Below, piece after piece: positions 39,923-64,000 of a DNA stretch of 64,000 nucleotides. Origin of the DNA: Phallusia mammillata (Eukaryota). A program made the position numbers and the translations under genes. The stretch lies in assembly GCA_965637545.1 (NCBI GenBank), contig OZ281501.1, positions 7,688,001 through 7,752,000 of the forward strand, given 5' to 3'. The first letter of the stretch is position 1; each line of letters opens with the position of its first letter. Below the pieces are notes generated by a model. That model worked only from the letters and a program-made list of their open reading frames with translations. It was not told the DNA's origin and ran no database searches.

Positions 39923-40742
39923 ATGGCTGCGAATTTCAACGAACTGGACAGTATCGACCTAGCGTCCCTGGCTATTGGTGGTTGTGGCGGTCTAAAACCA
40001 CAACCTACTACAGCAGGCTACAACCAGCGTTACAACGACAACATCAATGTGACTTATAACAATATAAACGACTGCGTGAGCCGCCCACCTAACTTGAACT
40101 CGTGTGCTGTGAGCGGTGCTGAACCTGTTAATGGCACCGTACCAACAACTGGACCTTACATGCCTCCGTCTGTTGCTGTCAAAAGTGAACCAAACGGTTT
40201 TCACCCAAACGTGCCCCCGAACCAAAACTCTTACCCCCAAGCAGCCCCACCTTCCCAGGGAGGTTTCCCTCCAAATGCTAACCAGCCCCGCAACGCAGCA
40301 TCTACTATGAAAGCGCTTGGTTTTCTGACCGAGCGTACGATCGAAAATTTCTTTAAAGACGGAAAGGGGGTTTCTCACGCCACCCCTTACCCACCTGTTT
40401 CGCGCAAATCGAGCTTAGGGGGACACGCACCCAAACTCGGCGAAACGCTGCCCCCCTTAAAGCGCTCACAGCCCTATTCAAATCCACGTGATATGTATAA
40501 TGCAAATTATCAAAACTATAACGGAGGCGCACTTCCAAATGGCCGTATGATGCAGCACCATCAGGCCTACGCCCACCATAGACGCCAAAATGGGTTACAA
40601 GCGGGTCCCTGGGTCCCAAATGATGGGGGTATGGGTATGGGACCCGGTTTGCCTCCTGTCAAAATGGAATGGAATGAGTTTAACGACCGTGGCATGCTTC
40701 GCCATGATGCTTATGCTCCTAACATGGGGTATTATCCTCATG
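39923..40742 (+). CDS. Large P/G/N/Q-rich coding exon, inferred RAR isoform-1 N-terminal extension (273 codons)
   Basis: Longest ORF in the window, higher GC, strong donor gtgagt; two psi-K-x-E motifs (VKSE, VKME). Confidence 0.85.
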
Positions 40743-43700
40743 GTGAGTTATACAGTTTCGGTGCAAGGTTGTTTATTTTAAAGGATAAATGTGACTTCCT
40801 CGGTTAAACCTAGTTTAGTTTAGGCTGGCGATTCATGTGGTTTTCTTGTACCAACTTGGACAGTGTTGTATATTGTATCAATTTTCATTTTACTAGTTTT
40901 TAAACTGAGCTTTCAGGTGTGCTTGTAACGTTTTTAAGTATTTAACCCTGTGGTATTTTGTTTTCAGATGGCAGCGATCGGCCGATAATTCGTGATGAAT
41001 CGTTTTCACCACCAGGTGGCGTGCACATGAACGGATTTCCAGGAGCTGAACGGATGAGAGGTAGGAGATGTTTTTTATTTGTTTTTTACAACATACACTG
41101 TGCCCATGGTTTCAAATTCCAACTCTTAAGGTTTACTGCGTTGTTCGTTAAAACGTCCAACTGTCAATTGTCAGGCTCAAAGCAAGCTTGTGCCGTTTGT
41201 CTGGTTCAAATTGCAACGATTAAGACAGTTTTAAACCAGCGGCAGTTTGGCATTGACAACTGTATAAAAGTGTATAAGCATGCTTTGGTCTGTTCACAAA
41301 TTGTAAAACTGATGCCTTAAGAACTTCATCAGAAATCGCAACTTAAATTCCAAGTTAAGATTACGTCAAGGCAGTGGGTTTTTCCACTGTATCGTCACAA
41401 TGTCGTCAGACAAATGCGACCACAGCCTGTTTGGTGATACAAGTAAACAACGGGCTTGTGCGGGAATGAGACAGCGCATTTGGTAGCAAGCAATTAATGT
41501 CTGAAAACCTATCACGTTTCGTGGTTCAGTCGAAGGCAAGCCGCTCACAAAAAGACGGAACACCTCAAATTTCCACTTGTCTTTGCCACTCTTTGTTTAT
41601 TATAGTATATACTGAAGAATTTCAAGCTTAGAAAACGCTGTGCTCAGATGAACAAATCTTAAACACAAATTTGGCCATCTACAGAGTTTTAACGAATAAC
41701 ACAGCTTTGCTGTTTGTAAACCGTGAGATATTTACACATATCGGGATATTTGTTGGATTTAAGATTTTTCAACTTTTGTTAATGCACCTTTGTAGCACTA
41801 AACAGCACCGCTTAAAAATTACCCACAAAATAATGTTGTTTATTCATTTCAAAAAAGTTGCTATTACACCATTGACAGAAACTCGCCATTTCTAAACTAT
41901 TTTTTAAGTTTTTAATCTTAGTAGGAAAATGACACCAGCAGTTTGCGAAAACGAGATGCGAAACTACCGTATTTTCCCTTATAAGACCAGTGAAAGTGCT
42001 CTTATAGAAAAGTTTCGGTTATCGTACAGTTTACTTTGTGGTCATTGTCTTGACATGCGGATACAAAACCAAAAGCACAATGTTTTGTTCCGAAACTATA
42101 CCTGCTACGTCTTTGTGATTTAAGTTTCACACGAAATATGAGGATCCGGTTTTGTTGTTGTTGGACCAACAGCTTTTTACAGCAAAGACAATTCATTCCT
42201 GAAAACCTTTTGCGTGATTTTTAAAAATACGTGCTTTCTTCACGTTTTAAAGGTTTTAAAGGGATATTTCAGTTTGTAAGATTACAAAATATACATTAGC
42301 AAGTTATATTTTTACAACCCGTTCAATTTTAGACAATTCCAACTTTTTTCAGCTGCTGTTGATCTAATAAAATGAACTTTAATTGAAAACCTTGATCTGA
42401 AAACAGTTAAAAACATAGAAACATTTTCACTAACTTTGAAAGTTTTGTTTTTCCAACGGTTCCTTTATATATTATTCGGGACTTTGTAAGCTTGGTTTAA
42501 ATGATTCTTAGTTGTTAGAGTAACGGATTTGCTTCAAAAACTGCCCCCAAAGACATGTAAAAAAGACTCAAGGAAAATGCAAGAGTACAAAAGCGCAAAT
42601 ATATCAGAACAAACATGAACAACAAATCTTTGATCTTAATTAAAAAATTACAGTCCGGAAATACGAAGCGGCCACGAAACTTTTCTTATTAAATTATAAA
42701 CATGGCCGTCGTGTCAAGTTGTCCCAAATTCAATTTAAATGTGGCGTGAAGTCATAAAACGTGATTGAAGACTAGACTGGGCGTAACTAACATGTCCAAC
42801 AACCCAGCAACTATTTGAACATGGCAACGTCGACAGATTTTAAAAATTAAACCAAAGTCGACTGTTCTTTTCTATTTTAGGTGCTGGTTTACTGTTCTTA
42901 AAACAACAACATCTGTTTTATCAGTAGCAGATTCGATCTACACATACATATTCAAATACGAACTGTTGCCTTATGCGCTATCTTGTTTATCATTACATCA
43001 TCGCATTACAGCGCTTGCCTCACTTCGTCAAGGATAAAGAGTAAACAATTCCAAAATAACCACTGTCAGCCCCCGCAAGTAGCAGTACAACAACAAAAAC
43101 GCGACACTTTTTAGCACGAAAGTCTTCTGTAAATATTTTGTCCATCTTCAGTTTATTGATGTTTTCTACGCCTCCATGGCTTGTTGCTGTCGTTCGACGT
43201 TAAGCTCCGGAAATTGTCTCTCGTGCATTCGCTCCCTATAATCCGGATGCATTTTCTCCTTCAAGTTTATTTACGCGTTCCGATTTTGCTTGGCCTGAAA
43301 TCTTGTGCTTGGTCTTATTGTAAACAAGTAGGGGTATAACATTTCTTGTCTTTCGCGTGTATTGGGAATATCTGATGAAACCTTTCCCAAGGTTGTCTGT
43401 TTTGTAATTTCGTCACAGGGTGTTCGCAACCAACTCAATTAACTAGTTTTACGCTAATTATTGCGTTAAGATACGTGTTTTAGTTAGTTGATTGTGTTTC
43501 ACAAGACATCTCAGCACGTTTAGTTTATCATTAAATGGATAGATTGACATGTTTGTCTTTGTAAGAAATCAGAATTTGTTTAAATTCAACATTTTGTTTT
43601 AATTAGTTATGGTGGTTTTGAAAACCTTGCTTTTTCCACATATTTTCTGTGAATTTTTACAAATCTTTAGTTAAACTATATTCACTTTTCCTCTACGCGG

Positions 43701-46700
43701 GCCTGACCCCCAATTTCGATAAAGAAAGAGTGGCTCAAATTTATTTAAAGCTACACAAGTAACATATATGTATTTGTCATAGTATGTTGCATTGTGATTC
43801 ACAGGTCCCCAAAATGTGAATTTTACAACAACTTAGTATTTACCAAAGTTCAAGACCTGGAAGTCTCAAGTTTGGTAGTTAATGCATTTCAAACGATTTA
43901 ATTCTTAAGCAATTTACCCACACCTAATCGTTCAAACTCAATCCACTTTAATCTTGCGAAGTCGTGCATCTAAGGTGTGTAGTGGTATACCATGTTGGTC
44001 AGAGCCGATTGTGGTCGCTTGACTTTTTGATCAAGCTTCACTATAAACAAGTACCATGCCGCGTTGTCTGTTGCGTTGGAACAGCATTAAAGAAGTTATA
44101 CAGTGCTGAAGTCATTAACATATAACGCACTCGTTATTTTGTACAGCGGGATTCTCGTTTTGGAATAGATATACGTTGTTTTCCTTCTCTTTACATTTGT
44201 AAGCTTTACAGCTATATTTGTGGTCTATATGGAGATATAAATTTTATTTTGTTAATACTGTACAGGCTAATCACTTAAAACCTGTTTTAATCCATTAAGA
44301 TACTGAGAATCGAGAGTGTTTTCCAAGTAACAGTATCAGTCAATGAATTTACATGGAATATATACATTTCGTCTAACTGGCATATTCAGTTTCCACAAAA
44401 CCACAAGATAAAACATAATAAAACCACATTGTTTCCAATGAAATTAATGCAATGAAACATTTATAATAGTCGTATGGGGCCAGCAATGTGATACATTTGT
44501 CGAATCGAAATTTAAAGCTATTTATTTGCGCTTTCGTAACCTTAACAACGTAAGCCTTTATTCTAAGAAACACACGCAATTCGCTTGCTTCATGAAAGCC
44601 AGTTATTCAGTAATAATTGCAGACCCATCTCACCCATACCAAACCTAGTTCAGCAAATACAAGTTCCAATTAACGATACCAAGGTGCTGATTATTGTCAC
44701 AAGCCAACGGTTAGTTTAATTTTTTCGGATATGTTTTCTCCTGTGCCGGTGGTTAGCTGCTAATTTACCAATTCTTTGATGCTTTTTTGCTCAAAGTTAC
44801 AATGTTTTGCAACAGGAAACATGACCCGTGGGCTTGAGAAGGTTGTTACAAAAAAGACTGAACAATCGCTTGTAAGAATTTGGGTAATGTTATGTGTATA
44901 TTTTTTACATTAACATCAACATTAAAAGGTACGTCTGTTCGTGTGTATGTACAAGTTCATTGTGTACACTAAGGACCACTGTGACCAACGTTGGGTATGT
45001 ACGCAGTAGCCACACACCAATTAAAGCGCAGCATATATTTCATGTGCTCTAAGAAAGAGAATTGGCCTTTCTTTTCCTTTGAGACGTTAAAGTCAAAAAT
45101 TGTAATGTTTGGTATATATATTTCTTAAATTTAAAACCAACAGTTTCTTATCTAACTTAGTAATTTTTACAAATCTCTATTTCGAAATGTTAGAAATTTC
45201 CACATTACAGCAGGCTAAAGGTTACATAAGCGTGGCGCTTATCGTGTTGCGCGTGGCGTATGTCGAAATATCACCGAGGGTAATGAAAACATTTGCAGAT
45301 TCGATTGTAAGATAACAGTTCCCATGTACCACAAAATGATCGTACTTGGACAGATCAAAATTCTCCTTTAGCAGCGAGTGAGATTGTTTGAGTGCATTGT
45401 TTTTATTTCCGTTCTGTAATCCCCTCGGATTTCCGATTTGTAGGTAAATGGCGTGTTGTCTTAACCGGTCGCCATTGACCGAGAGGGGCATTTAATGTTA
45501 TGTAACAAAGACAAGACATGCTTTATATAACCAAAGTAAAACACTGGGAAACAATTAAAAGCCTTAAAAGAACTTTTTTCGTCATGATTTACTAAAAGAC
45601 CCATCGTATACAATGCACACACAATCAAAAACATCCCTTTGACTATATATTTACCATGTTTTCGATAGAATAAATATCTCTTAACAACTAATCACCCAAA
45701 GGGTCACAGATTAAGTAGCCACAATTTACTGGTACGATATCGTCAATAGGCATCATATGGCTCTTTCCTACGTGGTATTGGCTGCAGCCGCAAGCCAACT
45801 GATGGTATCTCTTCAGATCGTTACAGTTTTGCGGCTTAGAAGAGGCACAGAGATAAGTGCGAATATCGTTTTTTACTCAATGGTAGTGGCACTTCATGCC
45901 TAGTGTTGGTAGTATGCCCTGCTTTTCTTTTTCACAAACCCCTTATTTTGTGAAATATATCATGAAAATACGATATGCTTTATTATTTAACGTTTCGACA
46001 AATGCTCATGTCATCATCAGTGATGAGGGGTTACACCAGTTTTTAAACGCTTGAGTCACATAACTTCTATTTGGGCCGTTATTTTTATCATTAAACTTAT
46101 GAAAAGATTTATGTATAGTGTTCCAAAATATATTGGAAGTGATTTGGTGGTCACAAGAAATTGGTTTTCTAGGTTGAAGTAAAGTGTTGCACATTTTGTT
46201 TTGTCCTTTGTTTAATTTTTTCGCTGTTCATTTAAAATAGTTGCCTTGGGCATTAAAAGTATGTTGCAGGCGTTTACGCGGCCTGACAACGCAAATTTGC
46301 TTCGTCGCAGGGCGTAATCCAAATGTTTACACAAACGCGCAAACACAAACAAACTCTGAGCGCCTCCGCACCCTGCCACCCTGTGGCGCTAGAGTGCCCT
46401 CATACAAGCTACAACCGGGTTCAGCGCAAGGTCAGCACCGGCTTGGGGGTTCATCTGGAGGTCACGCCGCGCGTCGAGGCGACCGGTTCCGCATGGTTGC
46501 GCGTGGCTGGAGGCGCTGGTATCTTCTTTGCACTGATTTTATGGTTGCGAGTTTTGCGGTCACACCGGGAATTCATGACCGTATTCGACTATGAGCTTCG
46601 CTTCTAAGGTTCCGCTACGTATGAATGGAATACTAGCACGGGCAATTGGCTTTGCTAAACTTGAATTGGAACTGCGCTGTTGGTTTGTTTCATACGTGGC

Positions 46701-49700
46701 AAACCAAGTGTCATTTCATTACATAGTCAAATATACATTTTCCGAACATTTTTGTTGTAAATTTTCACCTCACAAAAGGATTGTTACCATTTGTTGCAAG
46801 CCATGGCGCTTAAACGGACAGTTTTATGCCGAAAGGATGCATTGAGAGTTATTACGGCCTAATTAGTCACATTTGATACCTAGGCGTCAATGCTCTTCAA
46901 CTCACAACACATCACTGCTTATGTTAGATATTCCTAGGAAAAGGGCAGCTTGCTTGACGTCGGCTGGGTTAAGCCGCTTATTAGCTTAAGACAGCCAATC
47001 GCTCTATCACGACGAGGAAACAAGGTGTACCGTGCGAACGTGAAAACCGGTACCTTTCTCCGTCCCAGCCCAAATCCAGGCACTGATTATTTTACAAACA
47101 CTGTCGCATGTCGCTTGTCTCGTTTAAGTCGTGGGAAAATCAACTTTCGACTTGTGCGATGACTTCTTTGGTGGTTTCGGGAGTGACAACGTGTCCTTGT
47201 TTCTTGGAGATTGTGTTGTAAGGAATCAAAACTCTTACAGTGCTATTGTGATAGCGGTTGTTGATAGTATTCACTATGGCGGTTGGGTGTTTGACCAAGC
47301 TAAGTCCATGGTGTTTTTCATTAGTAATGGTATAGCTACAATACTTAAATTTTTTGCTAGAAAGATTTGTACAAGCCTCTATACAACGTATTAAACCAAA
47401 GTGAATTCCAGTTGCTTATGACAAGCACTTACAAAAACTATCTTTGTCTGTGGTGTGGCTTTCACAATTCTCTACCATCAAACCTGTTTACGAAGCTGGT
47501 GCAGACGAGATCGTGATGGTATGACCGCCGCAAGCTGCTTAACTTGAGCTGCGATTCTTGCCGACTTCATATATCACTTTTAATTAATATCGTACGCTTG
47601 AGGCAATACTACGCAGAATGTTTGATTTCGTTATGCAAAATGCGGTCTATATAAACCGCTTTAGCCGCTTTGAATTCTTTGTACCAACCTCTAGGCGTAA
47701 AACCACCAATAAACATGACTGTTTTGTAAACATAATATCACCATAATATCTTAAGCCCTTAAAATATCTTTCAACGTGGGTATTTCGTCATATCTTAACT
47801 GCATAAAGATCAAACTAATGTCATTTTGGGGTTTTAGGTTCGTTTAGGTTTGAACCTAAGCCCAGTTTTTTTCATTTTCCTTCCTAAAGTTTTGGCTGGC
47901 GCCAATTTCATTAGTGTATCATAACTTTCGCTATAGCGATACTTCAGCATACGTTAAGGATTTCCTATTGGCTGAAAACATCGGTGTGCAACAGGCAAGG
48001 GTCCAACTTGCCTTTATTGAGCTGTAATGGGTTTTGTGATTTCTTGCCATTTCGCAATCATCTTACACAATTCAACTATCCACTTGGGATGCCAAATAGA
48101 ACACAGAATTATAAGTACATGTCCAAGAGCTAGTGTTGAATGTTGCACACTTAAAACATGCTTACGTGCATGTTGCATACTGTGCAATCAAAATATAGAA
48201 AGCAAAACTCATGCCAGGTTTTGTGTGACGTTGTATGGGAAACATGGGTTGGTCTATAATTATTCCAAGTTTTCACAAGCAACCTCTGCAATTACAACTC
48301 CCGGTTTGGTAAGACAATTTCACTGGCTTGCTTTGCTATACCTAAACTTGTTATTCGCTGTCTTTGTAATAACCCTCTTTGTTTTACTCTGGTTAGCCGA
48401 TCTTAAATCCATTGCCCATTATTATATCCGCAAGTGGGCGCTATTGTCACTGTGGTTGCTTTATGTCGTGCCTGTGCAGGACGGACAGTTGCAAAGATTG
48501 ATTTAATTGTATATTTTCTTAACTTTCTTCTCTAAAATCTTTGATGGAATTTAAAGATAAAAATATACCCCAAATATATTTTAGGTTCATATATGAAAAA
48601 TCCCCAACCATATTAAATTTTACTCTGATGGGTTTCCCCCGGTCGTTTAACACATCTTTTGGTTAGCAACTAAGCACGTCGTATAATCGTTTTTGCCAGG
48701 GTAGAATTTGTAGCACAAAAAAGTTTGTAAAATTTCGTATTGCTTTTGGCGGCATGGTTTCATCTAATGTCATACGTTATTGGCAAGCACACTAAAGTCT
48801 AAATACAGACTTCTAGTGTGTAAGTTACGCACATCAGAACATGTTGGCATCAAACTCAACAAACATCCTACAAAATTACGGCGAAAAGCGCAGAGGATGA
48901 TGTTTTGACGAGTTTATCGTGTCGTTACTCAGTTAAGTTAAAACAACACACGTAGCGGTATGTTCATGACGATTCGACCTGCCCTGTGCTGACTGGTAGT
49001 GATATTTCTATCGGAAATGAGTCAATCGCATCCGAACCTAACTGTAATTGACGTGCACTAAACTGATGGATACCTCGCACCTGTCACTTGTACACTTATT
49101 TGGTCTGTGTGACAACTGATTAGTTGTAGGTGTGAGGCGCTACCCCAGTGTTTGTAGAGAGGTTGTAATTGGACCAGACGTAGGATTTTTTACGCATTTT
49201 ATTGATTGACTGCTTTTGTAATTGCTGTGCCCCTTCCGCAAAGATTGCGATTGTTATTCGTTTAACGCTGATTTATTTTTAAAAAAATGCAGTAGCGGTC
49301 GATAATTAACTGAGGTATACTACATCGTTTGACCCTAATTGATCTTTCGGGTAACCTTTAAGCCCTTGGACATAAAAATCGAATTTATTCACATTTTGGG
49401 CAACCAATAAACGTCCCCATTGTCTTTTGGTACAGTTTCACAAAAGAGCTTAATATCAAACAATGCACAAATTACATAACACACAAATATTTTGTTAGAA
49501 CCAAACACGGCGTTGCGGTGACATAACAGTTAAGGGTTACGACTTTATGTACGTCATTGCAACTATCATTTATTACTGTGCATCATTAGTCTATTGTGAC
49601 AATTGCTACCGTTGAAATGACTCATTTAGACGTGATCTCATCGCGCTGTGATCGGTTACTATTCACGAATTCAAACGTTACCAATGGGTGTACGAGATCA

Positions 49701-52700
49701 CATTGCTGTAACATAATCCCTCTCCTTGAATGCTGGGCCTTAGTTCTACAACCTCTGTCATTGTTTTGTCATTAATGGAAAACAGACAAGGGCACATTGG
49801 GTAGTCTGTTTTATTTCACCAGCCCTCTTGGTGAGACTATCAAGCTTTAATACGTGATGTGTCATAATGATTAATTATACATGCCAAATGACGAGGGAAA
49901 TTTATGTAATATACTCTGTTTGCGTAATGTATTCAATTTTGATCGTTTGTAAATGTTTTCTTTTTTTTGAAAGGTTAGAATTTACATCATTTTATGGCGC
50001 AGTTTATTTTTACCTCAATTAACTTTTATACCCAATACCTAACAAGCCGAAGGGTGGGCAAAGAGTCATCTGACTCTTTTTTAAAAGAATTTCTGTCTGT
50101 ATAATAATTACAAACACCATAAATAGAAAAAAAAGGTTTTAAGTGGCTTTGTACAGTCATGCTCTAAAACAAGAAAATTATAATCAAACCACTTAATCAA
50201 TAAGTTATTTAGTCCTTCCTTATGCCCATTTTAAGCAACTTAACATTAAACTGCCGTGAGAGCTATTACGATTTCCATGTAACTTGGCATTGAAACTTAG
50301 CAGAGATCTAACCCCGAGCCATCGATATTCCCGCAGCTGTGCTAGTGGTTGCCAGTATGGGTTGTCTAATATGCTAGATTAGTCTCAAGCAATTACATTA
50401 CAAGGGCGATGACAGACTTTTAAAGCAGCAGCTCTGTGAGATTATTCTTAAGTTGATTCGACCTAACGATTCGTCCCTGTGATAACATTACTGAGGTGTT
50501 GAAAAGGTAATTGGTATTTATTTTCTGTCAATCAAGTACCGTTGGTTTTGCGCAATTGACTTGCTTCCCAGGGGGTTGTGGTTGAAATCTAAGCATCCTA
50601 TACAAGTTTTGTTTGGTAATACAAGCAAACGTAAGAAGAACAAAAAAACTGTTTTATTTTTGCCTTTGTTCTGTTTCAGTGCAAAACATATTAACACGCA
50701 GTTGTTCAATGTTTTTTACTACACTATGTTTTTTGCCAAGTAATGCCAAATTTTGGTGGTTGATAAACCGTTCCCACGATCGTGTAGGCCTTTGTGACGT
50801 CACATAGCATCTCTGGTTTTGCATCTTGAGCAAAGTGACGTGATACTCGATTCGCTTCAACCTGAAAAAAAAACATTTTTGATAAAACACAGCTTTTGCG
50901 TATAGTATTTACTACATAGTTGCACGAAAGTATTGTAGCATGGTATGACTTGACCGTGCAATTTGCAAGTGAACTCAAAGGCATTGGTATTTACCGAGAT
51001 ATTAAAATCAATTATATATTTGCTCTTTCCACAAAGACCGCTCGTATCTACGTATATACTGGTTTATTTCTTAAGTTCGACCTTTAAGATGTTGAACTCG
51101 TCTTAGGTCTTAAGCTTCTGCGGCTGTATGCCCTTGGGAAGATTTGCGCAATTGATATAATTGTTGGCTCAGTCTGATACACAGTCGCCGTGTTATTTGT
51201 AATTATGAGCTGAATGTCGAGTATTTTAAGTAGCACAATTCAACTGGTTGCATGTACAGTCTTTTGATTTGTACTTCATTACGAAACATGTTGTTTTGAC
51301 CTAAGGTTTGGTTGCATCAATGTAACACCGTATTCTAGGGTAATAGCTTTACCATAATTGTTTCCACACAATCTAAGCTAAACAAGACCACGAAAAAATA
51401 GTATAGCTTTGTAATTATGTCAAATTGAACCTGTAGCCTGTACATTGTAACAAATACCCGTTCGGACACTAGGTATCAATTTCCTAAGTCAAAACAATGG
51501 AAATCCAAACAGCCTTAGGCAACGTACTGTTTGTAATAGTTTGCTTTTCCACCCCAAGGGGACGAAAACCCGCCGTTCGTAATCGATTTGAGATTTTCCT
51601 TGATAGAGTGGGCGCCAACCGCTAAGTCTTAATCTGTCTTCTCTATTGTTTTGAACGTAATTCGCTTACACCTTGACGCTGGTATGACCTCATGATCGAC
51701 ACCGGTTCAATGTTGTTACCGTTAATGATGACAGAACATTAAATGGAAAGAATATGCAACAATCTTTTATGACATGTTGTTTTGTGGGGAATTGTAACAT
51801 ACGGTAAAATCTGCGTTATGTATTCGACCAAAAGGTTGAAAAAAATGCATGATATACTCATACGCATGTAAGCTTCCATATCAAGAACATTTTAATGCAG
51901 TTTTTACAATATATAGTCGTGGGTAGATGTGTTGAGGACTTATAGTAAAATATCAGGTTTATTCTGGTAAACGACCAATTTGAAATTCACAATCCTGATG
52001 GTCCCTTTAAATATATGTTCTATGGTAGCAGCCCCCAAAAATGCGGTTTGGCCGAGTTTGCTAGCTGTACTGTTTACTGCTTGTGAACAGATACCTTGTA
52101 GTAGTCACAGGCAGAGCATAATCCTGTTCTTGACATAGTTTCGTATCCGTACCCTTAGCATTGTATTCTGCACTAACGTTTACATTTAGACGAGGTTCAA
52201 TAGCACGCAGCGCATTGAGTAAGCACTTGAACAGGCATATGAAACTACTTGGCCTAGTTCCAATGCCGTGTTAAAAACAACAATCCCATTTGTAAATACA
52301 TTCCTTAAAACGAGATAGGAAAACAATTTTGGTTCAAATTTTTGGGATAATACTGAACAGGTTATTTTTTCCCATAGGTCCAAGTTTCAAACATGTAGGA
52401 TGTAATTTCGAAATATACGTGATGTTAACTTGGCATTTTATTGTTCAATGCAATTATTGGCTTCAATGTTATGTTGCTGGGGTCGGCCAGGCAACGACGT
52501 ATTACGAAACAAATTGTATTAAAATTTATTTACGGTAAATATGACTTCCGCCAATTATTATTCACCCGATGTCACATGTAATTAAATTACTTTTGTTTAC
52601 TGTAACGTGGATCCATTTTTTTTTGTTTTTGGTAGTTTATGTAACTCAGTCATATACGGCACAATTGTAGCGGTATCTTGTGGATGTTTTTTTTTGCGAG

Positions 52701-55700
52701 GAAGTATTTCCTTACTGCTCTGACTTCACACGCTATACCTGCGTTTAGGAGGTCTTCAGACGTTTGCGTGTATTTTGATTGGCACTACGAGGGGAAGCGA
52801 AAATGGGTCTTCCGAGTTCACCAGGTTGTCTAAAATTCATTTTAATTTTATTTCTTGTTTTTCCGTATCCTTTTTTCACATCTGATAACACTAATTTTTT
52901 GATTGGGTTTCTATTGGTAGGCCTAAGTTTAAAAAGTGTCATTTGGTCAACGATGAAATTAAAATGGATCAAAATTCAATTTCCCTATACGCAGAGTAGC
53001 TTAAACGAGCAGTGCAGTACTGGCTGTTTTAAAGCAGGGTTCTGACTACTATGTTAAACAGCCAGTCCTAATTGCTGTCAGTCTTTTACCAAGTTTCATT
53101 TCCAAGTGACAAGCGTTAGTGAAGGCTGTCAGACATTATACTAGAGTTTTTTTGCCATTTCCTTTCTTAACCCATCAATCATACCACACTTACCTGTGCT
53201 GATGACTTAAATCCCATTGGTTCTCACAATAATTTTATTCCGCCTTGTAATGCCTTGCACTCCTGTGAACCCAGTATCTCACCTTTTAACCGCACGCCAA
53301 CACATTAAAGGAAGCCAGCTATCATAGATGTGACCGGAATTGCGATAAAATACGTGGTAACAAAGATATTTACAAAAAATATGAAGAGCATGTGGCCATA
53401 TCCCTTAGTTAATTCACTAACAGTGGTTTAGTAAACATTGCAACATATAGATAAGCATCGAATGAAAAATTTGTAAGCCAATTAATTCATTTTCTTGTTT
53501 GGTAATATTTGTGCTAACCCGTTTCTGTTCCCTAACTGTAAGGTTTATACACTTTTAGATTCATTCAATAGTGATAAAAAGCATGTTTACGATAGGGTAT
53601 GCATAAAAAGTTGGGCTTTAGTTTCTGAAAACCACTTTGGTAATTTACCATTTTGACCCCACGCTTAAACATTAAGGGTTTCTAAACTGGTCTCTGTCCT
53701 TTATTAATTGACACAAAAATGTAATATAAGTTTCGTAGGTTACATAGAAAAAAAAAAAAAAAAAAAAAAAAATTTTCCTAAATTGGTAGACAATAACTTT
53801 CTATATACATAATACGAAAATAGTTTGAGTGAAGAATTTTCGGAAACGTTTAACTTATTTTCGATTTCGGGTTACCTTGATTGATTATGAGTTCACCTAA
53901 ATATTTACTAAACAAAATTCAGAACGAAGTTAGTAGAAAAAGTCAAAAGGTGAACCACAGCATATTTTCCACTTTGTCAAATCTCGATTATCTTTAGCTA
54001 CATTTATTTTACTGTTAATGGGTTACTTTAGCTGACTAACGATCCAGTGTATTTTTAAAACCTTAGCGTCCTCGTTTGACGTTTTGACTCTTCTGTGGTA
54101 CCCAGTATTAAAGCGTTGGTGTAAAAGGATTTATTTGGTTCACCAGCTGAAAGGAAATGTTGACATTTACAGAAGCAGAGGCCGCGTCTTACACAAACAC
54201 ACAATCTATATAATATTATCATTAAACTGTATGCAAGCAGTGGCATCACAGAAATGACCTTTCTATGACCTGTTCCGCGAACTCGCCACGTCTTGCGTTT
54301 TCATCGGTTGTAGGAATTTGATTTTCCTGAGATTCTGTGGTCTGTTGCCATTTCGTTTCCAGTCTGGTTGCGGGTTTGTCGATTTAAATACAAACTGGGC
54401 TTTTTGTACTGTTGCTGTTTCGGGTTGGCCGGTTGCAGGTTGGCGCAGCGCTTGGTTACCACAAATTTAATATCATGCGGAAATACGCAATTCGTACCAA
54501 AGCGGCTACCGACAGGATTGTTTACGTGCAAATGCTGGGCCGCGAGAGAAAGGCGCAGGCGATTAAGAGTCAAAGGCGCGACAGAACGAGAAAAAGGCAA
54601 CCGATGACGAGAGAAGAAGAGAGAAAAAGAGCAATGCGTGAGCGGGGCCGCAGAATTTTTTGGTACTGGTTGCCAAACAGGCATTGGGTGTTTCTGTGTG
54701 TGCTAGGCTTGATGTACTGCGCTGCTGACGACAGTAGTGGCCTTATCCGCCAGCCAGGAAGTCGACATTGCGCCTGATCGCTGTTGTACATTGCATGTAG
54801 TGCGGTGGCCAACGCATTGATAAGAGCATTGCGCCGTGTAATAAACTTGTCAGTTTCCCACGTTTGCAGTTTGAAATAGCTTACCGTAAACCAGTGCAGA
54901 AGCAATCTATATTATACCATTAGTGGAAGCTGTTTTGCAGTGTAAAAACGTGTTGCCAAAAAGCTACCATACATCCGTTATCTGTATGATCTAGTTCGTA
55001 GTTTTTTCTGGATTAAAATAAGTGTAAACTATTTTAGTTTGTCTGCTTGCGTGTTAAACATGCAGTCAGCAGCTCGTTAAACCATCACGTAATGCACAAG
55101 GCGTGGATTTTGCGTGTCTGTTGCCTAATGATAATGATTACCACAATCCAGTGGTACAAGGTCAAACCTGGGTCATCGTGAGGCTCGAATTGTCGAATGT
55201 GTTAATCCAGTTGTCTTGTTACATCACAATGGCCTACCTTAGGGTTTTTCCCGCGTTTTATATTACTGCAGAAAAGATAGCAGATTCAATTTAATTAAAA
55301 GCTTTATTCTATGTTGTAGCTGTTGGAGGCAGATAAATTCGGAAATAATAACCCAAAGCGTTCAAAGTTTGCAGAAAATGTCTGTTTAGATTTTGCCACA
55401 GCCCCAATCAGTTGTTTATGTCGTGACGCAAGCCATATGAATATTGCATGTGGTTTGCGTTGCTCGGGTTTACGAAATTAAGCCCTTGTCTAGTCAGCAG
55501 ACTGTTAAACCTAATTATTATTATACTCTGTGTATTCTGAACAGCTTTGTGACTCAAAACATAGGTTGTCATACACTTTACAAAACACTGCTTGTGGCAC
55601 GTTTCCATGCTGCTGCAAGAGTGACTACAAATAGCAACTTTGCTACAAAAACAACGTTTTGAACCATCAAAAATCAAAATCTTCATCGTAATTTGACTCG

Positions 55701-58700
55701 ATCACTGCCATCATAATGACGATGGAATTTCAACAGCAATGGAGGAATCGCATGAACGGGATTCTGATGGACATTTTTACCCCAACAACCAGCAGTATGG
55801 GTGGGGGTATGGGCAATGGTGTGGGCTGTATGTATGGCGGTATGCATACAGTGATGGATTCACCACCACCTTTGCATAATCTCTCTATTAACCCGCAGAA
55901 TAATTATCACCACAACCAATTTTACCAATGGGAGAACAATCAAAGATGTATGTATTCTCTGTTGTTTTTTTCATGAGGTTTTTAGTTTTTCTCGATGCAA
56001 AGTTGTTTTTAAAACTCCATAAATGTCGATAAGCGATAATTTTCTTGAAAAAAAAACTGTTTGGAAGCCTAAAGCAAAACTATGCATCCAATTAAATTAA
56101 GGTTTAATTAAGAATGTATAAATTTTAATTGTTTTGCCAAACTTTGTGCTCTATGCTTTGCGTAATGAAAAATAGGAAAGTACTGTCACAGTCAACATGG
56201 GGAATTGTTTAGCTATTTTAGCTGTCCGTCAAAAGGAAATCACTTCCGTGCTGTGTTTGTTGATACACCTGGTCAATTTGCAGCCGTATATAGTTGTTTT
56301 GAAATCTGGACAATGTGACCCATTGCAAGTTCACACCGCGCTGTAATCGGTGGTCAAAAAACCCAGCATGTGTATACACCTTAGGCGATGCGTCGTGGTT
56401 TGTTGCCTTTTGCGTCCGAACTAAACTTTTGTTTGTGGCAGGAGCTTCTAACAAGGCACTGTCTAATCACGCAAACTGTTTGCTCTTTACCAAGCGCGCT
56501 TTTTGGATCCCTTCCGAACCATGCGTTGTGCACTACTGCACTGTTAGGTCTTTGGGTCATTTTTTCTTGGCTGGTTACCGAAACTCATATCATGCTACCG
56601 TTTTAAATACGTTATGATAGCAATTTTTGTTTCATGATTCTTAACTAACAAAAGGGCGACAGACCGTATAATGTGTTGTTTAACTTGACAAGTTTGGTTG
56701 TAGCAAGACCAAAACTTTGCCACGCGTCAAGCAGGCATGTGCAAAACGATTTGTTGCTACATAACAGCGTCTTGTTAAACGAGCTTAACGTATATTGGTC
56801 TTGAGGCGAAACGGCACTTCGCCGATCCCGAGGGACAGTGCATTAAATACCCAAGGGAGTGGCAACAAATGATTTGGCGTTGGTTCTGTGATCGTTCTAC
56901 AGGGCCTTAACTGATGTCGGCGACGTTTTATATATAGACACGCCAATGGGGCATGTTTCAGCAAGACTAAAGAATCAAAGTTGCAGCGGTACCTCTTTAT
57001 CCATTGGTCATCTGATATTTTGTCTTAGTGTACTTCCCAACATTACTTTCCAGACCACATACTGGACTTTCTACTAGTCCCACTGGAAAAACAACCACCT
57101 TTTATTTCTATTCCCCTTAGTCCAATGGTATCAATTTACTACAAAAAAAAACATTGTTCTGTTCGAAGTAATAAACTTCAAAACATTTGCATTATGTCTT
57201 TCAGTTCTTATTTCAAGCGCATCCGACCATACAGTTTGTAAGTCTTATGACCTTTTTGACCTTGACAACCGTGAAATTTACCCTTCACTTACCAAAACAA
57301 ATGGACTGACAACCGATAATAACGTCTTTGCTTAGCCGAAATCAATTCCGTGAAAAAAAAAGCAAAAAACTAATAATGTAATCAATTCTTTCTGTGCTTG
57401 CTTGGAAATAAAGTCAAAAACTCTTTGTATCTTATCAATAGTAATGTCGATTATCAGTGTAATTATTAACATTACGCACTCCTTTAAAGCAGAATACAGT
57501 TAAAAATAAGGACTTTTTAAAGATTGTTAAAAATATTGTTATGGCTGAAGCCAAAAATGTCTATGTAGACCATGCTCTAGCCATACCGTCGTCATGAGCG
57601 GGCAAAATATTTGTGTGTTGCAATGTGAACACGATGTGCAATAACGACGCAGCAATACAACTCACGTTGCACAACTATATCAGTCTCGTTTTGCTCACGT
57701 TTTGGCTACGAGATGTTCTTCATTTATTTGTTCGGATAATTTGCCAACACAACGATAGATGACACGAATTCACTGCATCCAACGAGCAAGTCACGCTTGT
57801 ATTCGATCTAACTTCCCCGCATGTGATGTTGTACTGTGACGAGAGTTTGTCACTTTGCGTCGAGTTAACTGCAAAGAAATGTGGTGCAATGGCGTAGGTG
57901 GCCAGCAGAAAGGATGTGAAAATTCTAACCCTTCCCGTTCTGTATACCTTTTTCGTCCAAAACAAAACTTAGCATTAGAATTTTCATCGGTGCAAAATTA
58001 TTTCGGTTGTCAATAAGTGTATTTGGTGTTTTTAGCCCGGTTATCTGTTTTAGGTCCATGTCTAGTCTTTTTAAGTATCTGTGACATTGTAGCTTGTAGG
58101 TGCGTTTTGGATAAGTTGTGTGATAATAGTCTACTTAACTCCTCAAGCTTTTCAAACCAGTTGCATTGCTGCAACCGTCAACTAAAAGCAATTTCTCTTA
58201 CACATAATCTTCTAATCTTCTGTCATCATCCAAGGAATATGACTCACATGTTGTTCAATCTCGTGTCTGTGTTTACCATAAACATTTCTAAACTTTCTGG
58301 CAAACAATTTAAAAATGCATGACCAAGTCTATGCCCTTTATTGGTAACGCAAACTATAATCTAATTACCAAAGTGCGGGATTATGCTTGAAAGTTTTTGC
58401 TGATTTTTTGCCCTTTCATGATTCTTTTGTTGTCGGCGGTGGTGTTTTAACTGTAAACACCTTCGGTAGACGGAGGTAATCAATCTTAATCGTTTTTTTG
58501 TAAGTTTTAAGCAAGCTTTTAAACAATGCGGCGGTCTGTTTAAATACGGCCCCTTATAAGGTATTCCCTCATATGTGTCTATGTTTTTGTGTTCATAAGA
58601 AGTTAATTGCAAGAAATAACGGTTGCATAGGTTTGTGTCCGTATGTGGTTATATGCGATAGGTTGTTGTAGCGCAGGTCGCATGTTTGTCTGCTGTGTTC

Positions 58701-60751
58701 TGTTTTATGTTGTTTGCTCGTCGCCGCATCTCCGCAAACACAAACGGCGTTCCAGGAATTCCAAAGCCAAACTCAACATTTCTGCACCCGTACAGACATT
58801 TAAGTTGTCGACCGTTTTTTGATGTACATAATTCAGACTGCAAGTCCGGCATTTTGCTCGACCCGCTGGCATGACCAACAAACCGCTATTGGCGTTTGAA
58901 ATGCTGACGCAGATGCATTTCAATGCGTCAGAAGTTAACCGTCGCAGATCTGCTGCGTTTGAATGATTAACGAGAGTCGAATGTGCTTTGATGTGGCAGT
59001 AAACAGGCCCCGACTGACTAATTGCGACAAACTGACCGTCAGTGTAATTAGGCTACATGCTGGCAATTTCACGGCCCATTTGTTCATGTACAATGCCAAT
59101 ATCTTAAAATTGCGTTTTACTGCTTGTTGACAGCTTGTACAGCTTGTCGTAAGACCATGGTTTATTGTAGTCGTTTCGATGGACAAATGATTTGCTTTAG
59201 GATAATAAAAACTACAATTGTGTCACTTGCTATCTGATGACTTTGTAAAACGCCTACCCTTGGATGTGTAATACAAAAAGCGACTAGTTTATGGTATTAC
59301 GTTGCACTCTTGATGGCACAACATCAATATTTCGTACAGGTGACATTATTCTAAAAATTGCCCGGGTTTTCCTGCAACCTTTTGTTATTTTAAACAAGGG
59401 AAACCATAGCCCTTCAACCTGTTCGCAGACCACACAGCCATTACCTCTTCCATGTTTGTCATTTAATTAGTTGCAGATCGCACTTAGTATTAGAACCCGC
59501 TTTTCTCTTGTAGTGTATGGAAGCAAAGGCACATTTTGAATTCCTCGTGACTGTAAGAGCAGTGCCAGTGACGCACAACGCAAAATGTCCACAACTCTAC
59601 CACTTTACCGCTTTGTCGTTTGAGTGACACTTGATCAGTTGAGAAGCATGTTGCCTTTAGTGTCTCCGTCCACTCCAACACTCTACTCTCAACGAACACA
59701 CTTTTATGCGTTGTTTTGTGCAAACAAACTGATATAAGTGATTGAGAATGCCCATGTTCACCACGTTTTCAAAAAAAAATGCAAGTAGAAATGTAAAAAC
59801 ATAACATTCTAGGACGAATTAACAACATAAACACATATAGAACCGGTGACAGTGTTCTTAGTCGATGTGTAACTTGCAATCTTGTTAAATTAAAATGCAA
59901 CATCAGTGAATTACCCAGTAGTCTGTGACAAATGGGAAACGTTCTTTCTGCAAGCTTCTGTAAAAGGTTCCTTGATGTGGTTATGGGTGGGGAACGAATG
60001 TTTTAGCCTTGCCTTTACAACTGACAGTTGATGAGCTCTTCCACCTTTCAAGCTGAAATCAGTTGCAAGAGTGTTGGTAGTTATCAAACCTTATGTGTCC
60101 ATCAATAATCTCTGCTCGTTGGTACGCCACGCTGTTTGAAACAACGGCCCTCACCACTTCAAGCGGCCTATGTCGCACCTTACCGGACGAAATACCTCTC
60201 AAAATCACTTCACTGTGCGTTTTTCCACTTTATTTGTGCGTTTCATTCACAATCGATAGAATAGTCGTCATATACTGGTGCATTCTTTTGAGTTAAAAGA
60301 AAGATTATACTCGAACCGTTTGAATCTAAAAACTTCCTGTGGCGTTGTGAACTTGAGTGTCTACTATTTTCAGTATCTTAAGGAAAGCTTGTGTAAACGT
60401 TACATCAAAGTCTTAAACAAATCAAACATAACTTAGTCGTTATTCAACCCTGTCGGTTGGATGTATTGGAATTTCCAACCACACTGTCTATTGGCTTTCA
60501 CTTTTAATCCCCAAGAATTTTATTCATAAAATTAAATTTATTGTATTTTTTTTTCAGCATCACCAGACAGTGTGGGCTTGTCTTCAACTGGGAGCAGCTA
60601 TTCAGGTTCCGAATCCGAAGGTCTAAGCCACGTGGGCCAGTCTTGTCCACCTTCTCCACCACCACCTCCTCGCACCTACAAACCATGCTTCGTTTGTGGC
60701 GACAAGTCATCTGGATATCATTACGGCGTTGCTTCCTGCGAAGGCTGCAAG
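39923..60751 (+). CDS. RAR: Retinoic acid receptor (NR1B), long isoform-1-like form, 5' part: exons 39923-40742, 40968-41060, 60558-60751; continues beyond the window
   Basis: ATG at 39923; CAT G/gtgagt at 40743; ttttcag/AT at 40968; AGA G/gtagga at 41061; tttttttcag/CA at 60558. All phase 1 and in frame. The 93-bp exon encodes [11 protein letters not shown], resembling vertebrate RARalpha1 region A (TPGGGHLNGYP). Linkage across the 19.5-kb intron is inferred. Confidence 0.75.
40968..41060 (+). CDS. RAR: 93-bp phase 1-1 exon, RAR region-A-like ([31 protein letters not shown])
   Basis: Canonical splice sites; PGGxH(M/L)NG(F/Y)P motif shared with vertebrate RARalpha1. Confidence 0.8.
46418..46434 (+). 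promoter_or_regulatory. Perfect DR5 retinoic acid response element
   Basis: GGTTCA-gcgca-AGGTCA. Confidence 0.8.
46448..46464 (+). promoter_or_regulatory. Perfect DR5 retinoic acid response element (second of tandem pair)
   Basis: GGTTCA-tctgg-AGGTCA, starting exactly 30 bp after the first. Confidence 0.8.
53748..53772 (+). repeat. Poly(A) tract (25 nt)
   Basis: Directly visible homopolymer; no associated retroelement body recognised. Confidence 0.9.
54255..54271 (-). promoter_or_regulatory. Perfect DR5 retinoic acid response element
   Basis: TGACCT-ttcta-TGACCT (AGGTCA-tagaa-AGGTCA on the minus strand), at the 5' edge of a GC/purine-rich promoter-like block (54280-54850). Confidence 0.75.
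55159..55175 (+). promoter_or_regulatory. Perfect DR5 retinoic acid response element
   Basis: AGGTCA-aacct-GGGTCA, about 540 bp upstream of the ATG at 55716. Confidence 0.75.
55716..55947 (+). CDS. RAR: Alternative first coding exon of RAR (short, isoform-2-like region A, 77 codons)
   Basis: [23 protein letters not shown]...FYQWENNQR then T/gtatgt (strong donor, phase 1), in frame with exon 60558 (S-SPDSVG...). Confidence 0.8.
60558..60751 (+). CDS. RAR: RAR common exon: region B plus first C4 zinc finger
   Basis: SPDSVG...[36 protein letters not shown]/gt versus vertebrate [38 protein letters not shown]; the intron right after CEGCK is also the vertebrate RAR position. Confidence 0.97.
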
Positions 60752-63189
60752 GTAAAACATAGTGATAGAACAGGGCTGCGTTGGTCTTGAAGTAAAATTG
60801 ATGTCAAGCAAGCGGGTTTTAGTTCGTTAGTAGTTTACCTAAACTACGCTTTGTTAAAAGTACTAATATTTTGTTGCAAAATGCCAGGGAAGACAGTAGT
60901 CCAACCTCAGCTGTTTTTAGATATGTACCCATCGTAAACATAGACAACAGTATGCAAATAAGTTCTAAAATAGAACGGCATGTGTGATATCAACTCACAA
61001 ACAATTTTAAAAGTGAGAAAATATTCCTAATTGCAAGATACCACATCACCATTCAAACCCAGTCCACAAACACTAATGTCTAACAAAGACAATTTCACAT
61101 TAATACAAAATATCCTGCAATGTGTTTTGAACACTGATACAAAATAGACACCACTGCTTGACATGACATGAATTTTGTTTGTAAGACATGGCAGAGGTCT
61201 TGGGAATTCGTGTTTACATCAGTTTTCGTGTGTACTTATCCCCAGCCGTCGTTCCCAATCGTGATGAACATTTGCATATGACGTGAACGCTGCACGTTTT
61301 AGCAGACTGCTTTTGTGGTAAATGTTACATTTCCATTTGCAGTAGGACTTTTTATTTGGGCGCATAAAACGCATGCAATTGACCTTAACAAAAACGTAAC
61401 AGTCAAAAAAACTTGCATATAGTGAACACATTTTGTTACAAATATTTTCTACCCGAAATCATGGTAAAATATTTGTACTAAATCGTGTTCACTAAGCAGA
61501 AGTTGTCTAGTTTTTATCTAGGTCTTTCAAATTTGTTCCTAGATATCAAATTAAAGCTCAAAAGGAAATTAAAAAATCACCATTCCGTTGTTTGACAATT
61601 CAACTAAGCGGTCGTATTTTAGTGAGTTCGCTGCAGTTAATTGCGTTTAGAACACAAACAGTCTCCTAATCAATTTTAATATTGCGGCTTGACAAAACAC
61701 AATCAAAGCCAAGCCGCAATCACGACTGGAACAAAAGACTAAAAGCGGTTGACGTCTCCTGTCATCATTGTTAGCGGGGTACGACGTTAATCGTTCCAAC
61801 AATGAAACCCAGAGTGCAACCCACTTTTGAATATGACTTGATGTTTGGGAACCTGCTGTGATGTGCTGGAAACTCCACCCAGGGGGCATAACGTCGCTGA
61901 TCTGTTTAATGGGCGTAGAATTGTTGACTTGCCTGTGGTTTCCGCACCCATAAATAGCGCATGAGAAATGAGACTTCACTGAAATGACTCCTTTCACACC
62001 GAATTCATTTCTGACAAAGCAGTGGCAAAATTTTGTTTTACCTGGTATGGTCGCAAAAGTAAACACATTTCAAAGCAGTCAACAAGCATCTAATCTAATG
62101 AGGAACAAACAAGTCATTATTTTTCAATGGAACATTACGTTTCGTCAGCAACTTGTGTCATTCTCAAATGAACTGTTGCTGTCGAAACGTCATGTTCCAT
62201 ACAAATATGTATTGGCTTGTTTGTTTCTCGAAAGTATCTTCAAAACCGTTAAGTTGGTACCTAAACATGTATCTAAAATGGAAATAAATCAGTCCCCCTG
62301 CAACTATTCTTGCCACAGGATTATATTTTTCCACAAATAAATTGACTTATTTTTATTTGATCAACCAGTAGTTCATAATGGTCGAAGTACGTAATGTGAC
62401 GTCCTAATGTGAGCTAATGTTGTACGGTCGGTCCCAGAGGAATTGGCGAAACAGAATGACTAACCAACCTTATTCGCATACAATTGTTTCGTTAAGCAAA
62501 CGTTACTAAAAGTCAGTGGTAACGTTCATTGATAATGATAGCCTTGTACTTTATATGCATTGTCCACATATAAAATCGAAATATATTTCACTTTATTTCA
62601 CGTGACTCAAATGGATATAAACGGGTGTAACTGATGTGGTCTTCATATCACTGTTGATGGCATGGGCATTTGCCGAAACTTATGAAAAATAAAGCATGAC
62701 GCTTTTTACGTTTATTTGGGCCGTTATTTTCATCATTAAACTTCTGAACAGATCCGTATATAGTGTTCAAAAATCGAATTTATACAGCAAAATTCTCTTG
62801 TTAAAGAAACGGTACATTCTGTAAAATTAGTGGTAACGATTCCGAATTACATTTGTTAGTTTAATCGATAAAACCAAAACTTGGAAGAAAGCAACTTCAA
62901 CCTGCAAGCAATTTCGCAAAACCGATTTTAATGACCTCGATTTGAAGGCGGGGGAAATAAAGAAGACCGTCGCCACCCTTGATGCCAATGATCGATCGCC
63001 ACTTGTCTTGACAGCTCTGTCGGTTTGTGCGGGTCGCCGCCAAAACGATCGGACATGTGTGTCACTCAGTTTTGACAAGCTGTCGATAGTTGTGTCAACG
63101 TCTTTTTGTTAGCTGCATTCTGTGAGCTTTAAAGCGCTTACAAATACTAAATCAATGCCTTTGGTACTAAAGTACAGTTTATGTCTGGT

Positions 63190-63310: not shown

Positions 63311-63356
63311 CTTAATTGGTTAATCAATCTATAGAAAAACAGCGCGCTACCAATAT

Positions 63357-64000
63357 TTATGTGTCCCCTTCCCTGAAGGGGACACATATTGATTTTACTC
63401 AAAATGTTTTTGTTTTTTTCTTATTTTTTCTTCTACCCAAAGTTTGTCCGACTCGTTTTTCCATCAAATCCTTGATGGATTTGGATGAAATTTACACAGA
63501 TGGTAGATGTAGTTATGTAGATGTGCATCCCACTTTGTTTTTGTTGATAACCCCAGTATTTACCCCGCTAGCCCCCTAAAATGGGTATTTTTTCCCCGAA
63601 GTTTGTCCGACTCGTTTTTCCGTCAAATGTTTGATGGCTTTGGCTGAAATTTACACAAATGGTAGATGTAGTTATGTAGATGTGCATCCCACTTTGTTTT
63701 TGTTGATAACCCCAGTATTTACCCCGCTCGCCCCCTAAAATGGGTGTTTTTACCCCGAAGTTTGTCCGACTTGTTTTACCATCAAATGTTTGATGGATTT
63801 GGCTGAAATTTACACAGATGGTAGATATAGTTATGTAGATGTGCATCCCACTTTGTTTTGTTGATAACCCCGTTATTTACCCCGTAAGCCCCTAAAATGG
63901 GTGAGTTTTTAAACAGTGTCAGAATTGGCTGAAATTTGGATTTCTTGTATAGTATGCCATTTATATGTCCCTATGACGTCAGAAACATTAACGGTTGTTG
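63357..64000 (+). mobile_element. Helentron/HINE-like non-autonomous element with three 159-bp central tandem repeats; may run off the window
   Basis: The 35-bp 5' end matches 30294-30328 with one mismatch, including the 9-bp-stem hairpin; T-rich tract; AGTTTGTCCGAC recurs at 63441, 63600 and 63759. Confidence 0.75.

Follow-up and report, generated by a model that had tools for sequence, protein, structure and literature searches.

The 64,000-nucleotide stretch of Phallusia mammillata DNA analyzed here (contig OZ281501.1, positions 7,688,001 to 7,752,000; referred to below as the window) contains the 5′ half of this ascidian's gene for the retinoic acid receptor (RAR). One of the introns of the gene carries two direct repeats of the nuclear-receptor half-site RGKTCA with 5-bp spacers (DR5), GGTTCAgcgcaAGGTCA and GGTTCAtctggAGGTCA, and this twin DR5 is predicted, with a probability of roughly 0.65, to be the P. 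mammillata copy of an ascidian-wide response module for RAR and the retinoid X receptor (RXR) that regulates the RAR gene itself. The narrower claim, that the half-sites are under selection and belong to a real nuclear-receptor response module, holds as judged by comparison between species.

The gene was identified from both protein and RNA. Residues 1-369 of the P. mammillata RAR protein (P0167) were identical to the translated window exons 39923-40742, 40968-41060 and 60558-60751, with the first of these giving the N-terminus. The exons were joined only for this identity check, and homology searches used unjoined sequence. When exon 60558-60751 was used as the query, the top match among solved structures was RAR gamma (E 1.4e-17), and the top matches in a search of the full library were the RARs of Ciona intestinalis (95%), Styela clava (82%) and Polyandrocarpa misakiensis (81%). 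Contigs from four runs were placed on 40701-46700 and were taken as RNA because a GT..AG joint was present. They join RAR exon 2 to the exons ending at 14885 and 40742, and onward to 60558; the loose end after 41060 maps to 60558, while the loose end before 40968 maps to 14854-14883.

Since the splices 40742>40968 and 41060>60558 are found in the RNA contigs, the GC-rich island that holds the twin DR5 is intronic. The element is situated within the 19.5-kb intron 41061-60557, 5.4 kb past the last A1-type exon and 9.3 kb before the ATG of an A2-like alternative first coding exon. The open reading frame (ORF) of the latter, at 55716-55947, matches the N-terminal ends of short RAR isoforms from Polyandrocarpa, Ciona, C. 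savignyi and Clavelina, and its predicted GTATGT donor in Phallusia is in phase 1, compatible with exon 60558. The initial annotation of this DNA, made from its letters alone and without naming the RAR gene for this element, had proposed a retinoic acid (RA) enhancer. Its location inside the RAR gene turns this proposal into one of a candidate RAR autoregulatory element.

The motifs were all found as first described. Both DR5s are on the plus strand and begin 30 bp apart, and they are accompanied by TAATCC (46315-46320), TGTTTAC (46324-46330), GCAAACA (46339-46345) and ACAAACA (46345-46351). The island was also as reported: 46301-46550 has 60-61% G+C, the maximum of the window, compared with 37.7% window-wide. 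The label "CpG island" carries little meaning for this segment because the CpG observed/expected ratio of the window is 0.93, with no CpG depletion.

Within the window, which has no runs of N, RGKTCA-N5-RGKTCA occurs four times, compared with 0.10 times in shuffled sequence and 0.15 times expected analytically from the half-site density. The exact form GGTTCA-N5-AGGTCA occurs twice, against an expectation of 0.01. Among direct-repeat spacings from 0 to 10 bp, DR5 was the commonest (four occurrences), with two each of DR4 and DR6, one DR3 and none of the others. Dinucleotide shuffling of the 351-bp island (200,000 trials) produced at least one DR5 in 0.044% of trials and at least two in none. 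Chance is no explanation for the Phallusia DR5 pair. Outside the half-site bases the two 30-mers are identical at just 6 of 18 positions, and they are therefore not the product of a recent tandem duplication. Internal short repeats of the island (ATGGTTGCG[C/A]GT twice, GGTTCCGC twice and a third GGTCAC[G/A]CCG) were each within chance.

A cross-species alignment, proposed at the outset as a check, was positive. The window was compared with three further RAR loci, from Ciona intestinalis (L003), Clavelina lepadiformis (L004) and Styela clava (L005), each with RAR on the plus strand and with its exons mapped by tblastn. Four sense-strand half-sites are present at the same place in all four RAR genes, between the last A1-type exon and the A2 exon (Table 1). 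Like DR5-type retinoic acid response elements (RAREs), the Phallusia elements are direct RGKTCA repeats with a 5-bp spacer, and perfect copies of this arrangement also occur in Ciona, Clavelina and Styela. The spacer between the two outer DR5s is 13 bp in Phallusia and Clavelina and 5 bp in Ciona and Styela, giving periods of 30 bp and 11 bp, respectively. The 5-bp inner spacer creates a third, overlapping DR5, and in Ciona all three are perfect. Styela belongs to the Stolidobranchia and the other three genera to the Phlebobranchia or Aplousobranchia, so that both main ascidian lineages are covered.

In the four-way alignment (alignment A2), 15 of the 24 half-site columns were invariant, compared with 3 of the 49 other ungapped columns (Fisher p 4.5e-7). 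These three invariant columns outside the half-sites are an A just preceding half-site 2, a T directly following half-site 3 and a C directly following half-site 4. Low-stringency blastn of the module's intron across species returned nothing alignable but the A2 exon, and conservation is therefore confined to the binding motifs. All 12 perfect DR5s of the four loci fall in the A1-A2 interval (four in Phallusia, three in Ciona, two in Clavelina and three in Styela), where 0.006-0.044 would be expected per species (Poisson p 5e-8 to 4e-5). The other 171 kb of these loci contain none, against 0.31 expected, and DR5 is the sole enriched spacing in the Phallusia, Ciona, Clavelina and Styela loci. 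Local G+C is also raised around the Ciona module and, slightly, around the Styela module.

The divergence of spacers and flanks, with half-sites kept in four ascidian RAR genes, bears out the earlier suggestion of selection on binding rather than simple duplication. That the array was kept while its surroundings diverged beyond alignment argues that selection maintains direct control of RAR by a nuclear receptor across ascidians.

The conservation also bears on whether the cluster is a functionless product of chance, or the relic of a repeat or minisatellite. A repeat fragment (45965-46129) does lie immediately upstream, and some 250,000 windows would yield a handful of chance DR5 pairs, as roughly estimated from half-site density. 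Nevertheless, the window contains the island only once, and contigs from other copies, which collect on the adjacent repeat, are not found on the island. Moreover, the same array stands at the orthologous place in three other genera, from both major ascidian clades, in surroundings that cannot be aligned. An origin by chance or from a repeat is strongly disfavored and is considered very improbable. The initial annotation had held that the enhancer would be refuted if the segment proved to be a fragment of a multicopy transposon, and this was not borne out within the window or its RNA contigs. Self-blast of the window found no second copy of 46130-46900, and contigs from the repeat copies end at 46108, outside the island.

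The dispersed repeat fragment itself adjoins the island upstream and ends before it, and is also found at 62602-62774 and 22542-22572. RNA contigs from other copies of this repeat, 90-95% alike, stack on 45965-46108; self-comparison of the window places the fragment at 46046-46129.

Table 1. Coordinates of the DR5 arrays, accompanying motifs and RAR exons (window coordinates unless a locus is given)
Feature	Position	Strand	Details
Phallusia array	46418-46464	+	GGTTCA gcgca AGGTCA, 13 bp, GGTTCA tctgg AGGTCA
Clavelina array	L004 4152-4198	+	GGTTCA cctaa AGTTCA, 13 bp, AGGTCA tacaa AGTTCA
Ciona array	L003 19126-19164	+	GGTTCA ccgaa GGGTCA cacct GGTTCA tggaa AGGTCA
Styela array	L005 53371-53409	+	AGGTCA aacaa AGGACA cacgg AGTTCA ttgaa GGGTCA
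DR5-1 (half-sites 1 and 2)	46418-46434	+	GGTTCA gcgca AGGTCA; aligns with DR5-1 of Clavelina, Ciona and Styela
Inter-DR5 spacer, Phallusia	46435-46447		13 bp
DR5-2 (half-sites 3 and 4)	46448-46464	+	GGTTCA tctgg AGGTCA
GC-rich island holding the twin DR5	46270-46560		Up to 61% G+C; one copy in the window
TAATCC, K50 homeodomain (Otx/Pitx-type) motif	46315-46320	+	103 bp upstream of the module
Three forkhead-type motifs	46324-46351		TGTTTAC (+), TGTTTGC (-), TGTTTGT (-); CAAAC-rich low-complexity run
Further perfect DR5, AGGTCAtagaaAGGTCA	54255-54271	-	1.46 kb upstream of the A2 ATG, edge of the second GC-rich stretch
Further perfect DR5, AGGTCAaacctGGGTCA	55159-55175	+	0.56 kb upstream of the A2 ATG
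Alternative RAR 5′ coding exon, ATG at 14769	14748-14885	+	Contigs from each of the four RNA runs join it to exon 2
RAR long A/B coding exon, isoform 1 type	39923-40742	+	GT..AG joint to 40968 in RNA contigs
RAR exon 2, last A1-type exon, 5′ border of the module's intron	40968-41060	+	RNA contigs
A2-like alternative first coding exon (predicted)	55716-55947	+	ORF; matches N-termini of ascidian short RAR isoforms
RAR exon, B domain and first zinc finger	60558-60751	+	RNA loose end; homology

In all four species the module occupies the position of a P2-type RARE, being located in RAR past the A1 exons and before the first coding exon of isoform 2. It might thus be proposed that the island is a promoter, the ascidian equivalent of P2, with transcription beginning just past the DR5s and the 5′ part of the RNA being lost by cis-splicing or spliced-leader (SL) trans-splicing onto the A2 exon. 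Like P2, the module is placed between the A1 and A2 exons, the vertebrate RARβ RARE is promoter-proximal, no stretch of the window is richer in G+C than the island, and a TATAAAA sequence is found about 100 bp downstream of the Ciona module. Several results oppose such a role. The contigs of the four RNA runs cover exons 1 and 2 (40.7-41.06 kb), yet none falls on 46301-46700. No TATA box or conserved core-promoter motif was found downstream of the Phallusia and Clavelina modules, the start of a coding exon in the island is ruled out by the reading frames, and a promoter here would call for an outron or 5′ intron 4-18 kb long. At 9.3 kb from the A2 ATG, with neither a TATA box nor an RNA contig on 46301-46700, the Phallusia module does not appear to be promoter-proximal. 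The promoter explanation is weakened by these findings and is regarded as unlikely.

Two further perfect DR5s of the window, starting at 54255 and 55159, bracket a second GC-rich stretch at 54.3-54.9 kb. No counterparts were found at those positions in the Ciona or Clavelina loci. This second stretch may be the true isoform-2 promoter region. Styela has extra DR5s of its own at L005 52284 and 68123.

Other identities of the island were also considered. A coding or first exon was rejected, as the ORFs have no Pfam match or homologue and no RNA contig is present. Frames opened by an ATG downstream of the DR5s either stop before a candidate donor or reach it in the wrong phase, which excludes a coding exon starting in the island. 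A structured RNA gene was likewise rejected: there was no Rfam match at the gathering score (best E 1 in a scan to E 10) and no tRNA was predicted by ARAGORN. On folding, both strands of the island were less stable than shuffled sequences (z = +1.1 and +1.3). A scan for bacterial-type promoters and terminators gave nothing informative.

About 155 bp downstream of the twin DR5, the frame of ORF 46591-46845 (plus strand) reads RMNGIL at 46618-46635. The conserved N-terminus of A2 contains the same residues (WRNRMNGIL, 55.75 kb), with differences among the 18 nucleotides at third codon positions only. No RMNGIL counterpart was found past the Ciona and Clavelina modules, and there is no wider similarity in Phallusia. 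The match is probably due to chance; possibly it is a decayed duplicate.

As an RAR autoregulatory module, the twin DR5 is predicted to bind two RXR-RAR heterodimers side by side, on roughly the same face of the DNA. DR5 elements have a known polarity, with RXR on the 5′ and RAR on the 3′ half-site, and the same orientation would be adopted here. Without ligand the heterodimers would keep co-repressors in place, while in the presence of RA co-activators would be recruited. The RAR gene, probably through its A2 isoform, would in this way be tuned by its own product, and the neighboring Otx/Pitx- and forkhead-type sites might limit where the module is active. In keeping with this reading, the ligand-binding domain of a tunicate RAR drives transactivation in the presence of all-trans RA (PMC1500811).

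A number of points weigh against RAR autoregulation by this module. COUP-TF, TR2/4 and NR4A-RXR can also bind DR5 elements. Half-site 2 of Styela is AGGACA, one mismatch from the consensus, and the distance from the module to the A2 ATG is 3.9 kb in Ciona, 5.8 kb in Clavelina, 9.3 kb in Phallusia and 17.8 kb in Styela. BLASTP of ascidian A2 with a vertebrate RARβ2 A2 region was not significant (E 2.6), and orthology of the promoters therefore rests on position only. According to its title, the study of Nagatomo et al. (2003; cited in PMC7827873) saw no upregulation of RAR by RA in Ciona embryos. In addition, Ciona embryos are weakly RA-responsive, and mouse RARE fragments gave no reporter expression in Ciona (PMC3227721).

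These two reports on Ciona embryos would fit a nuclear-receptor site that is conserved but does not work as an activator inducible by RA, and that serves either another receptor or mainly ligand-independent repression by RAR/RXR. The sequence of RGKTCA repeats cannot by itself name the receptor that occupies them, which also favors such a site. However, the DR5 spacing is typical of RAR/RXR and is the only one enriched, the element is in the RAR gene, DR5-1 is like the vertebrate RARβ RARE down to the spacer, and a tunicate RAR is activated by RA (PMC1500811). A site without RA-inducible activity is accordingly judged improbable, and autoregulation of RAR is the preferred reading. The element might work at stages other than the embryo (in juveniles or adults, or during budding or regeneration), affect a single isoform only, serve mainly as a repressor site or operate via another receptor.

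The Fox and Otx/Pitx-type sites that the initial annotation had included in the enhancer are not significant within the window alone, where TRTTKRY occurs at 5.4/kb and TAATCC at 0.47/kb. A single TAATCC is found upstream of the module at 103 bp in Phallusia, 124 bp in Ciona and 161 bp in Clavelina; the chance of at least one in 250 bp is 0.11, 0.07 and 0.13, respectively. At least two TGTTTRY motifs are present within 250 bp upstream in the same three species, with a chance of about 0.08 in each. The independent two-species test of upstream recurrence, in Ciona and Clavelina, gave about 0.009 and about 0.007 for the two motif types. The distance from TAATCC to the nearest forkhead motif is 2-3 bp in Phallusia and Ciona. 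In Styela, neither TAATCC nor a forkhead motif was found upstream, and five forkhead-type motifs lie within 225 bp downstream. The proposed association of these sites with the module thus stands in part, with recurrence upstream in Ciona and Clavelina but not in Styela, and is suggestive.

The 30-bp phasing had been read as placing both elements on one side of the helix. It is exact in Phallusia and common to Clavelina, but Ciona and Styela have 22 bp. From start to start, the outer DR5s are thus 2.86 or 2.10 turns apart at 10.5 bp/turn. Both spacings are within 0.15 turn of a whole number, and the half-sites would therefore lie roughly on one DNA face in all species. A phasing constraint is compatible with these values, which represent two distinct spacings only, and cooperativity on one face is plausible.

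The window contains further parts of the RAR gene on the plus strand. Additional 5′ coding exons were located at 7752-7871 and 8896-9387; the former, together with an ORF containing FFINAAAQAISAALKP, resembles the long Ciona isoform P0002. Alternative 5′ ends of the gene number at least three or four. Two perfect RGKTCA repeats with 6-bp spacing (DR6), at 12740-12757 (plus strand) and 14278-14295 (minus strand), lie upstream of exon 14748, one of them 470 bp before the acceptor. Directly upstream of RAR is an intronless snurportin-1 gene (6206-7123, plus strand; Pfam E 8e-77). Snurportin is also directly upstream of Ciona RAR (L003 8884-9753), showing that synteny is conserved. The amphioxus RAR gene exceeds 100 kb.

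Two contigs of a metagenome assembly (ENA ERZ25067576; ctg8523, L001, and ctg6664, L002) also carry an ascidian RAR, with a B/zinc-finger exon 88% identical to that of the window. L001 also carries the A2 exon. The two look like haplotypes of one ascidian in that sample. Both were outside the module comparison, as they end 4.5 kb upstream of the A2 exon (L001) and 1.3 kb upstream of the B exon (L002).

Elsewhere in the window, tandem repeats with units of 158-159 bp were found at 63431-63907 and 30418-30717. Each array is preceded by a related 77-bp segment (63352-63428 and 30289-30365, respectively) with the palindrome GTCCCCTTCCCTGAAGGGGAC. Arrays and segments together look like a satellite or mobile-element family.

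DR5 RAREs and RAR autoregulation are already known as kinds, and control of RAR by a DR5 in its own gene is textbook vertebrate retinoid signaling. On the sequences compared here, the new features are the occurrence of such an element in tunicates with strict positional conservation, the architecture of four half-sites and the near-identity of DR5-1 to the vertebrate element. With subscription-only literature outside the scope of the search, no paper was found that contains any of the four ascidian DR5 17-mers or that deals with the cis-regulation of an ascidian RAR gene. The Hox1 RARE was the only tunicate response element described in the literature found. Tunicates are the closest relatives of vertebrates, and RA signaling in them is regarded as reduced. 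At about 47 bp, the module offers a short, mutable target for asking whether autoregulation is ancestral to tunicates and vertebrates. Reporter electroporation is routine in both Ciona and Phallusia, and the difference between species in the inner spacer (5 bp or 13 bp) amounts to a natural spacing experiment.

Among known systems, vertebrate Cyp26a1 has paired DR5 RAREs (R1 and R2) about 2 kb apart, and one paper on amphioxus is said to describe DR5s near CYP26. The amphioxus Hox1 and Hox3 RAREs are of the DR5 type (PMC3227721). Cyp26a1 R1/R2 and the amphioxus Hox1/Hox3 elements resemble the ascidian module in that more than one DR5 serves an RA-feedback or RA-target gene. They differ from it in forming no contiguous array of four half-sites and in lying outside the RAR gene, and the Cyp26a1 pair is not adjacent. 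The epidermal RARE of Ciona Hox1 (Kanda et al. 2009) is, as far as the account in PMC3227721 goes, the only one identified in the Ciona Hox genes studied. It belongs to another gene and is experimentally validated, whereas the RAR module is a computational prediction, is found in RAR and is kept in four genera.

The closest counterpart is the RARE of vertebrate RARβ2 (P2). The RARβ promoter contains a single DR5, GGTTCACCGAAAGTTCA, 3 bp upstream from the TATA box, which answers to an RAR agonist (PMC8997856). Like the ascidian elements, it is a sense-strand RGKTCA DR5 inside RAR, past the A1 exons and before the isoform-2 exon, and in both cases GGTTCA, with a G before it, forms the first half-site. 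Clavelina DR5-1 matches the vertebrate element at 16 of 17 positions, with one spacer base different, while Ciona DR5-1 shares its CCGAA spacer and differs at two half-site bases (15 of 17 positions alike). Both arrangements would place RAR under its own response element, as predicted from sequence in the ascidian case. In contrast to the single vertebrate DR5, the ascidian module has four half-sites, forming two or three DR5s. It is also separated from the A2 ATG by 3.9-17.8 kb, neither a core promoter nor a transcript was detected at it, and induction of RAR by RA is reported to be absent in Ciona embryos, as stated in the title cited in PMC7827873.

Descent of the ascidian module and the vertebrate RARβ2 RARE from one ancestral element is possible, although somewhat doubtful. 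With common ancestry, RAR self-regulation via a GGTTCA-CCGAA-type DR5 before the isoform-2 exon would predate the split between tunicates and vertebrates, and the module would be among the very few non-coding elements traceable between the two groups. The single promoter-proximal DR5 of vertebrates would then have been reduced from a tandem array in the ancestor, or else the array would be an expansion made in ascidians.

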